Sequence record: OR844650.1
Length of the DNA stretch: 64,000 nt
Direction: 5' to 3' (one strand)
The position numbers were made by a program, and so were the translations under genes. Positions 17,745-17,912 of the stretch are shown one piece after another. Within the stretch, counting starts at the first letter, position 1, and the number at the start of each line of letters is the position of its first letter. The notes under the pieces were generated by a model. It was not told the origin of the DNA. It saw only the letters and a program-made list of their open reading frames with translations, and did not search any database.

Positions 17745-17912
17745 TTATACATGTGGGACAAACATAATGATGTGTGTTTGGACAACTCTAGTGCCATCAC
17801 TTAAGATTATACCATTATCACAAACATCAATCACAGTACCCGTTACCTTTACACCACCAGTAAGATAAAAATCATATATAACGTTAGCATCTATTGTAAA
17901 AATATCTTTCAT
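17745..17912 (-). CDS. Hfq/Sm-like small protein (55 aa, below ORF track cutoff)
   Basis: [55 protein letters not shown] compared with Hfq [23 protein letters not shown]...MVYKHAISTVVP. Confidence 0.6.

Follow-up and report, generated by a model that had tools for sequence, protein, structure and literature searches.

A stretch of 64,000 nucleotides from sequence record OR844650.1 (the window, which here means the whole stretch) was found to contain a short open reading frame (ORF) of 55 codons on the minus strand, directly downstream of the ribonucleotide reductase gene nrdB. This reading frame, named ORF55 here, was found to encode a small acidic protein with a predicted Sm/Hfq-like fold which is conserved among related jumbo phages and which may act through protein contacts. 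The original prediction, which was made from the sequence alone, had described it as an unannotated phage Hfq/Sm-like protein and had proposed an RNA chaperone or a dominant-negative subunit of host Hfq rings. The features of the locus are given below with the evidence for each in brackets.

17745-17912, minus strand: ORF55, coding sequence of a 55-amino-acid acidic protein with a predicted Sm/Hfq fold (ORF list and sequence, PHROG match, orthologues, AlphaFold2 (AF2) model)
17963-19087, minus strand: nrdB, ribonucleotide reductase small subunit (Pfam PF00268, E 4e-48; synteny)
19142-21460, minus strand: nrdA, ribonucleotide reductase large subunit (its own hairpin 3′ of it, at 19136-19117)
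17449-17712, minus strand: ORF of 87 amino acids, PHROG 16437, the next gene 3′ of ORF55 (own promoter; kept in all relatives)
17920-17923, minus strand: weak Shine-Dalgarno sequence GGGT, eight nucleotides before the ATG (12 intergenic sequences side by side)
17930-17952, minus strand: hairpin after nrdB with 10 base pairs, a loop of three nucleotides and a U-rich tail (fold energy; conserved place)
17711-17740, minus strand: promoter of the 87-amino-acid gene with a -35-like TTGGAA, an 18-nucleotide spacer and the extended -10 element TGCTATAAT (scan score 10/12 with TG)

ORF55 was found to start with an ATG at 17912 and to end with a TAA at 17747-17745, and it is not extendable at the 5′ end because an in-frame TAA lies two codons upstream. 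It fills 168 nucleotides of the gap of about 250 nucleotides which separates the stop codon of nrdB (17965-17963) from position 17712, at which the next gene starts, where the original prediction had placed it, and the peptide stretches quoted there were found to be correct. The minus strand was found to contain, in this order, a virion protein gene, nrdA, nrdB, ORF55, the 87-amino-acid ORF, a 134-amino-acid virion protein gene and a MazG-like pyrophosphohydrolase gene, followed farther on by frd. The segment 17400-18300 was 100% identical to the Escherichia phages SHEFM2K, ECO103 4-12-1 and EC22.5-2, and for JP4, PBECO4, 121Q and related phages the identity was 96-99.9%. The window DNA is that of an Asteriusvirus jumbo coliphage of the PBECO4/121Q group, myoviruses of about 350 kb which form part of the Rak2-like group. 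The description of ORF55 as unannotated was found to be wrong for the public records, in which it is present as ACQ29_gp470 of PBECO4 ('membrane protein'), gp34 of 121Q and PHROG 17251. The latter, also labelled 'membrane protein', was matched over the full length with an E value of 1e-31. The labels for the PBECO4 and 121Q proteins are 'hypothetical' or 'membrane protein'; most public records annotate the gene, and those of phAPEC6, slurp01, G17 and RaK2 omit it.

ORF55 was found over its full length in 70 phage records by tblastn, with a protein identity of 33-100%, so that conservation in relatives, the lack of which would have told against the original prediction, was observed. Among the Rak2-like phages, five or more groups were represented (Asteriusvirus, Alcyoneusvirus, Eneladusvirus, Mimasvirus and Munch-like), and the hosts named for them were Escherichia, Klebsiella, Salmonella, Erwinia, Yersinia, Serratia, Pectobacterium, Cronobacter and 'Xanthomonas'. 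A family alignment of 12 sequences (the window and 11 relatives) was used for the comparisons below, and the same number of loci was compared for synteny. ORF55 was located directly 3′ of nrdB and 5′ of an 80-amino-acid gene in all 12 loci. This place was kept despite a homing endonuclease between nrdA and nrdB (CBB, GAP32, Kaldavass and XbC2), and also where nrdB itself is split (fHe-Yen9-04) or the neighbouring virion gene is gone (Hallingskeid). The endonuclease-type genes in the loci of the relatives were found at 1040-1813 (L004), 1075-1812 (L005), 37-810 (L006 and L007) and 603-1340 (L008), and in Yersinia phage fHe-Yen9-04 the nrdB gene is annotated as two pieces with an endonuclease-type gene between them. 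The reductase genes of the window did not contain any such endonuclease gene. These genes suggest mobile-element traffic at the reductase genes of the relatives.

All 12 aligned sequences were free of stop codons and frameshifts, and the family was found to consist of single-domain proteins of 55-70 amino acids with an identity range of 31-77%. The ratio of nonsynonymous to synonymous substitution rates (dN/dS, Nei-Gojobori, less saturated pairs) was 0.08-0.39, with 0.14 for the window and CMSTMSU, 0.23 for the window and Turkey5, 0.08 for Kaldavass and XbC2, 0.35 for BF and fHe-Yen9-04, and 0.39 for CBB and GAP32. The conserved D-N-G-I residues were encoded by synonymous codons which differ between genera. 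An exhaustive single-sequence HMMER search of 1.84 billion representatives returned seven clusters, all from the Rak2-like phage group, to which the family is therefore confined, and the same search gave no bridge to the cellular Sm families. A word-indexed protein search returned four close relatives and nothing else, and a scan of IMG/VR returned 121Q itself and nothing else. No second copy of the family was found in the window, as the profile match at 32479-32625 on the plus strand was noise lying antisense inside a 236-amino-acid gene. Because dN/dS is low, synonymous codons vary, synteny is fixed and a Shine-Dalgarno sequence lies at a conserved distance, ORF55 is, on this comparative evidence, a genuine protein-coding gene under purifying selection which is specific to Rak2-like jumbo phages. 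One family member with 77% identity is filed at NCBI as a hypothetical protein of 'Escherichia coli' on a contig of 349,498 bp, which is probably a phage genome under the name of its host.

The AF2 model of the window protein, built on an alignment of 10 sequences, had a predicted local distance difference test score (pLDDT) of 90.2 and a predicted template modelling score of 0.71. It was found to contain strands at residues 12-17, 21-31, 34-37, 42-44 and 48-53 and a 3-10 turn at 45-47, preceded by a non-helical coil at residues 1-11. The model of a 70-amino-acid relative (47% identity) contained the same strands with a pLDDT of 80.4, followed by a disordered acidic C-terminal tail, and its longer N-terminus was also without a helix. 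With either model, the best 50 Foldseek matches in the PDB consisted entirely of Hfq. The window model gave a template modelling score by query of 0.69-0.79, and most of its matches had a root mean square deviation (rmsd) of 1.1-1.6 A over 47-48 columns with 22-33% identity. A VIA-align comparison with 48,161 representative chains, which does not depend on Foldseek, also placed Hfq first (ranks 1-6, Z 8.0-8.6); the next matches were SmAP, an archaeal Hfq-like protein, Hfq of S. aureus and LSm proteins. The matches in the AFDB clusters were LSM, Hfq, Sm and DUF2642, and those in the ESM Atlas were Hfq families, the RimP C-domain and the MscS beta domain. Since two models, two aligners and five libraries agree, the ORF55 protein is predicted with high confidence to adopt an Sm/Hfq-like fold, a five-stranded bent beta-sheet; the Sm fold of the original prediction was thus borne out in the models, with Hfq as the nearest solved relatives.

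According to Mura et al. 2013 (PMC3710371), Sm proteins are marked by a Gly in the middle of strand 2 and by an Asp in loop L3. Both were found to be present, as G25 is invariant and aligns with Hfq G34, and D32, which is Asp or Glu in 9 of the 12 members, aligns with Hfq D40. The Sm ring interface consists mainly of backbone pairing of strands 4 and 5 (PMC3710371), and by analogy with other Sm proteins the ORF55 protein probably forms a ring through strand 4-strand 5 pairing of adjacent subunits. Hfq (PF17209; E. coli, PDB 4pno and 3qhs) and the ORF55 protein were found to have in common the bent five-stranded sheet with a 3-10 turn before strand 5, and the window model superposed on Hfq with an rmsd of about 1.1 A (47-48 residues; 25-36% identity to its core). 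Also common to both are the strand-2 Gly, which is invariant, the Asp of L3 and, in strand 5, the pattern I-x-x-h-x-P. Unlike Hfq, the ORF55 protein was found to contain an L4 loop shorter by two residues and no long C-terminal domain.

The sequence similarity to Hfq was found to be weak. BLASTP against E. coli K-12 Hfq aligned residues 16-52 with Hfq 25-62 at 36% identity (14/39) and an E value of 0.007 for the single comparison. The family profile searched against all PDB sequences placed Hfq among its best matches (E 0.5). By hhalign, the family matched an alignment of 18 gammaproteobacterial Hfq cores, all at least 87% identical and giving a narrow profile since the alignment stayed within Gammaproteobacteria, with a probability of 54-61% and a score of 25.3 in the Sm1 segment only. 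When the columns of either alignment were shuffled, the mean score was 9 and the maximum 18.8, and none of the 400 shuffles reached the real score. A home-made hidden Markov model of gammaproteobacterial Hfq ranked ORF55 first among the 686 ORFs of the window, with only 8.2 bits, and the negative example, T4 Frd.2, gave an hhalign probability of 0.4% against the family. No relevant match was found by a Pfam scan of ORF55 and all 12 members at E values up to 10. The likeness to the Sm1 motif which the original prediction had pointed out was upheld as a weak match far above the shuffled controls, and of the profile comparisons proposed as a check, hhalign gave this weak match and Pfam gave none. 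Judged on these alignments, the similarity to Hfq is real, yet it is too weak to prove descent shared with Hfq rather than with Sm proteins generally.

Most of the residues with which Hfq contacts RNA were found to be absent from the family. The N-terminal alpha-helix was absent in both AF2 models, and therefore Q8 and the rim residues R16, R17 and R19 are absent, and the N-terminal segment was without Arg in all 12 aligned sequences. The uridine-stacking aromatic residue F42 of Hfq aligned with the invariant G34. The position of Hfq Y55-K56-H57 was found to contain Q-T-H in the window protein and mostly T-D-K elsewhere, with T, D, A, E or S in place of K56. The missing helix and the missing Tyr and Lys of the YKH motif had both been pointed out in the original prediction. 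On the distal face, Y25, I30 and K31 of Hfq corresponded to Y16, V21 and K22 of the window protein, positions which vary in the family (Y/V/T/I/F/E at the first and K/E/Q/T/V/N at the last). The pore-side His/Lys at position 47, beside an invariant Ile in the strand 4-5 loop, was kept in 10 of the 12 members, and none of the basic residues was invariant among the 12 sequences. The isoelectric point (pI) was 4.1-4.7 across the family, with 2-6 Lys or Arg residues and a value of 4.7 for the window protein, against a pI of 9.99 and 8 Lys or Arg residues for residues 1-70 of E. coli Hfq. The invariant N-G and D-G-T are of the classic tight-turn type, and hydrophobic core residues make up the rest of the conserved positions. 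On the surface, conservation was found mainly in a short N-terminal peptide, K/S-D-I-F-T-F/I-D, which stands where Hfq has its helix. Several of the longer members end in short acidic tails (ETPE, DETA), and the window protein is without such a tail. The Hfq cores sampled in Enterobacterales (Cedecea, Buttiauxella, Brenneria, Photorhabdus and others) were identical over residues 1-70. With no match to the sequence model, no helix, no uridine pocket and no basic surface, the ORF55 protein is not a member of Hfq proper (PF17209).

Other labels were also compared with the family. The 'membrane protein' label was rejected, since the best 19-residue Kyte-Doolittle mean was 1.13 and the protein was modelled as a soluble barrel of the all-beta type. 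YfaE, the product of the gene after nrdB in E. coli, is a 2Fe-2S ferredoxin with four cluster-binding cysteines. A ferredoxin of this type was rejected because the members contain 0-1 Cys, which is not conserved. As positional analogues, T4 NrdB.1 was rejected for having no sequence relation and T4 Frd.2 for the hhalign probability given above.

The Shine-Dalgarno sequence GGGT (17923-17920) agrees with the weak ribosome-binding site of the original prediction, and the relatives were found to contain GGAG or GGA seven to nine nucleotides before the ATG. The terminator which had been placed just upstream corresponds to the hairpin at 17952-17930, for which a folding energy of -16.5 kcal/mol (z -2.98 against shuffles) was obtained. 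A GC-rich hairpin followed by a run of T was found 3′ of nrdB in 11 of 11 relatives, and the record of phage Munch labels it a terminator. The consensus terminator scan of the window did not list it. From its sequence, this hairpin would be either terminator-like or an RNA 3′-end stabiliser. Each of three successive genes was found to be followed by a hairpin, namely the virion protein gene (about 21523-21505), nrdA (19136-19117) and nrdB (17952-17930). No promoter-like element was found between these hairpins, and hence none ahead of nrdB, by the promoter and extended -10 scans, and the nearest upstream extended -10 on the minus strand is at 23416-23408. As nrdB itself lies behind a similar hairpin, the three hairpins are not complete terminators; they may let transcription through, or they may be 3′-end stabilisers or processing sites of the RNA.

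The promoter of the 87-amino-acid gene begins five nucleotides past the stop codon of ORF55, which from the sequence makes ORF55 the final cistron of the nrdA-nrdB unit; it would be reached only by transcripts passing the nrdB hairpin. The sequence TGnTATAAT was found in this promoter in 11 of 11 relatives, and the copy in CBB was found to contain TGAAACG as its -35 element. This element marks the 'divergent RpoD-like' promoter class which was linked to DNA-synthesis genes by Buttimer et al. (PMC5259590). The extended -10 motif TGNTATAAT was found 20 times in the window against 7.8 matches expected, with 16 of the 20 on the minus strand. Inside ORF55, at 17806-17814 on the minus strand, the codons of D-N-G-I-I were found to spell TGGTATAAT, a perfect extended -10. 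A promoter at this place as the explanation of the D-N-G-I conservation was rejected because the DNA motif is present in the window only and the residues are encoded by varying codons elsewhere; from this comparison TGGTATAAT is most likely a chance occurrence. A wastewater metatranscriptome contig of 424 nucleotides was found to span ORF55 (17663-18086); it is unstranded and may represent DNA carry-over. No transcriptome of a Rak2-like phage was found in the literature that was searched.

No paper describing the ORF55 family as Sm-like was found, and two recent Asteriusvirus genome papers did not mention Hfq or Sm. A close phage-encoded comparison is with GoF and MotB.1 as well as Frd.2 of T4, which are likewise small and non-structural and have a predicted five-stranded LSm-like sheet without an N-terminal helix, Frd.2 being encoded, moreover, in a nucleotide-metabolism cluster (PMC12152347). 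They differ in containing about 125-140 amino acids with an LSm-like N-terminal and a C-terminal domain, whereas ORF55 is a single domain of 55 amino acids. Structurally, the T4 proteins come nearest to SH3 folds of the FeoA type, Hfq being another close relative (PMC12152347), and the ORF55 protein comes nearest to Hfq. Among the three, the sequence comparison covered Frd.2 alone. A mutant GoF stabilises an mRNA, whereas wild-type GoF and MotB.1 were without RNA effect, and AlphaFold3 yielded no confident multimers of the T4 proteins (PMC12152347). The Sm-fold protein of viral origin reported in 2009 (cited in PMC3710371) also has no N-terminal helix, and shows that Sm proteins can be encoded by phages and can do without the helix. 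It differs in its C-terminal helix and in forming pentamers, and it was not among the best 50 VIA-align matches. In the T4 neck, a host Hfq hexamer acts as a transient second 'genome gate' under the neck protein gp14, so that an Hfq-fold ring is used as a purely structural, RNA-independent assembly part (Han et al. 2026, PMC12929587; PDB 9lu5). That ring is the host's own basic Hfq and not the product of a phage gene (PMC12929587), whereas the ORF55 protein is acidic.

The nearest structures and the sole detectable sequence similarity are those of Hfq, and the simplest view is therefore that the ORF55 protein is a very divergent Hfq/Sm relative. Because nearly all Hfq RNA-contact residues were found to be lost and the charge to be inverted, the reading that is favoured, to which about an even chance is given, is a minimal acidic Sm-fold module, probably a ring, which acts through protein contacts and is not a small RNA (sRNA) chaperone. 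In the proposed sequence of events, transcription from the nrdA-nrdB unit would pass the nrdB hairpin into ORF55, which would be translated from its weak but positionally conserved Shine-Dalgarno sequence. Adjacent subunits of the product would then join into a ring, strand 4 of one pairing with strand 5 of its neighbour. The acidic module, itself made along with the nucleotide-metabolism enzymes, may act on basic surfaces, for example those of Hfq in the host, or on a partner of phage or host origin whose synthesis coincides with that of these enzymes. The ring, the read-through expression, the lack of RNA binding and the protein target are all inferred. Several observations weigh against this reading. 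The Foldseek E values were about 5e-3 to 6e-3, a VIA-align Z of about 8 is reachable by unrelated small folds according to the warning of the tool, and small beta-barrels are common and Pfam gave no match. The gene lies behind a terminator-like hairpin with a weak Shine-Dalgarno sequence, and its matches in RNA libraries were unstranded wastewater contigs only, which may contain DNA (run X1 is probably DNA). The pore-side His/Lys may allow some nucleotide binding, and a monomeric adaptor is possible since the T4 LSm-like proteins gave no confident multimers.

An RNA chaperone, in which a ring binds phage or host RNAs in the manner of Hfq, perhaps at a modified pore site, would fit the closest fold, the retained His/Lys in the strand 4-5 loop, the Tyr16 and Lys22 of the window protein at the distal-face positions of Hfq Y25 and K31, and the mRNA stabilisation by the GoF mutant (PMC12152347). 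It is considered improbable, as the acidic family has few basic residues and none that is invariant, the rim arginines and Q8 are missing with the helix, an invariant Gly stands in place of F42 and T, D, A, E or S in place of K56, Y16 and K22 vary across the family, and wild-type GoF and MotB.1 showed no effect on RNA. Similarly improbable, and if anything a little more so, is a dominant-negative subunit which enters mixed rings with host Hfq, or an acidic ring stacked on the basic faces of Hfq, by which sRNA regulation would be shut. The core geometry does fit Hfq (rmsd of about 1.1 A), the Sm ring interface is mainly one of backbone pairing (PMC3710371), and the charge is opposite to that of Hfq. 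The acidic tails of the longer members recall the acidic tip of the Hfq C-terminal domain, which binds the basic surfaces of Hfq itself (PMC5606850), and together with the opposite charge they would suit a decoy placed on those surfaces. Strands 4 and 5 and the protein as a whole vary (31-77% identity) while the sampled Hfq cores are identical, which is unlike a tightly fitted subunit; moreover, a helix of the kind which packs at the Hfq subunit interface is absent, and the window protein lacks the acidic tail. Nothing that was tested supports either of these two functions, both of which came from the original prediction, and the acidic pI, the F42 to Gly replacement, the absence of an invariant basic residue and the divergence of the family weigh against them.

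The position of the gene would be explained by a small adaptor of ribonucleotide reductase or of deoxynucleoside triphosphate synthesis, a monomer or small oligomer which binds NrdB or NrdA or controls their mRNA. ORF55 lies directly after nrdB in every genus, despite homing endonucleases or the loss of the nearby virion gene, and shares the nrdA-nrdB transcription unit without a promoter between, in the same kind of surroundings as T4 Frd.2 (PMC12152347). This possibility is rather unlikely, though by no means negligible, because the argument for it is one of gene position, the searches made returned no Sm-like protein as a partner of class Ia reductases, and the protein is neither a ferredoxin of the YfaE type nor related in sequence to Frd.2 or NrdB.1. 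To our knowledge, no Sm-like partner of these enzymes has been described. It is, on the other hand, very improbable that the protein stands in for host Hfq in head-neck assembly, as a second genome gate under a gp14 homologue. For this role speak the T4 gp13/gp14/Hfq structures and the two-fold loss of yield on hfq-minus cells (PMC12929587), the appearance of PDB 9lu5 as VIA-align match 4, the T4-type gp13 neck protein (CBB_201) encoded by Rak2-like phages (PMC5259590), and the fit of a ring without RNA-binding residues to a purely structural role. T4, however, pairs a positive face of Hfq with a negative surface of gp14 (PMC12929587) and the ORF55 protein is acidic; ORF55 lies in a DNA-metabolism unit and not in a late structural unit, the family does not conserve K31 and Q33, the contact residues of Hfq, and the hosts most probably already supply Hfq, since the sampled Enterobacterales cores are identical to that of E. 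coli. Hardly any weight is given to the absence of a functional protein gene, that is, a chance ORF or the membrane peptide of the public annotation. The shortness of ORF55, its weak Shine-Dalgarno sequence, its place behind a hairpin and its absence from some annotations would suit a chance ORF, and they are set against the low dN/dS, the synonymous variation across genera and the confident, reproducible fold, and no hydrophobic segment was found that is long enough for a membrane helix.

A bolder extension of the acidic-module reading is doubtful at present. An RNA-blind acidic ring of the Hfq fold might cap the basic RNA-binding faces of host Hfq as an RNA mimic and so switch off sRNA regulation, or might replace Hfq as a removable second genome gate on a T4-type neck. 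If true, such a capping or gate role would be the first phage-encoded functional counterpart of Hfq, and the borrowing of host Hfq by T4 as a structural part (2026) makes a concrete alternative role for the family. Phage-encoded Sm-fold proteins have only lately been recognised; the GoF family of T4 dates from 2025 and stands beside a single cyanophage-like structure, and none of them is known to have a wild-type function. The ORF55 family contains the smallest and most Hfq-like of them, is separate from the T4 GoF family, and occurs in coliphages which can be grown in laboratory E. coli. Since the fold is kept, the RNA-contact residues are lost and the charge is opposite, it would offer a clean test of an Sm ring without RNA binding. 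A misleading 'membrane protein' label, which had spread through RefSeq and PHROGs, is also corrected.

The 87-amino-acid neighbour (17449-17712) was found to contain an acidic N-terminal half followed by a strongly basic, Lys/Arg-rich C-terminal tail, and no family or function was found for it by Pfam and PHROG comparison. On the plus strand, at 15616-16276, the orthologue of the 'virion structural protein' gp186 of K64-1 (214 amino acids) was found to be split over two overlapping frames, which may reflect a true frameshift, a programmed frameshift or a decayed gene. The piece at 15616-15933 (105 amino acids) matched gp186 residues 6-87 (E 3e-9) and is the only piece annotated in PBECO4, followed by the piece at 15797-16276 (159 amino acids), which matched residues 83-201 (E 7e-34).

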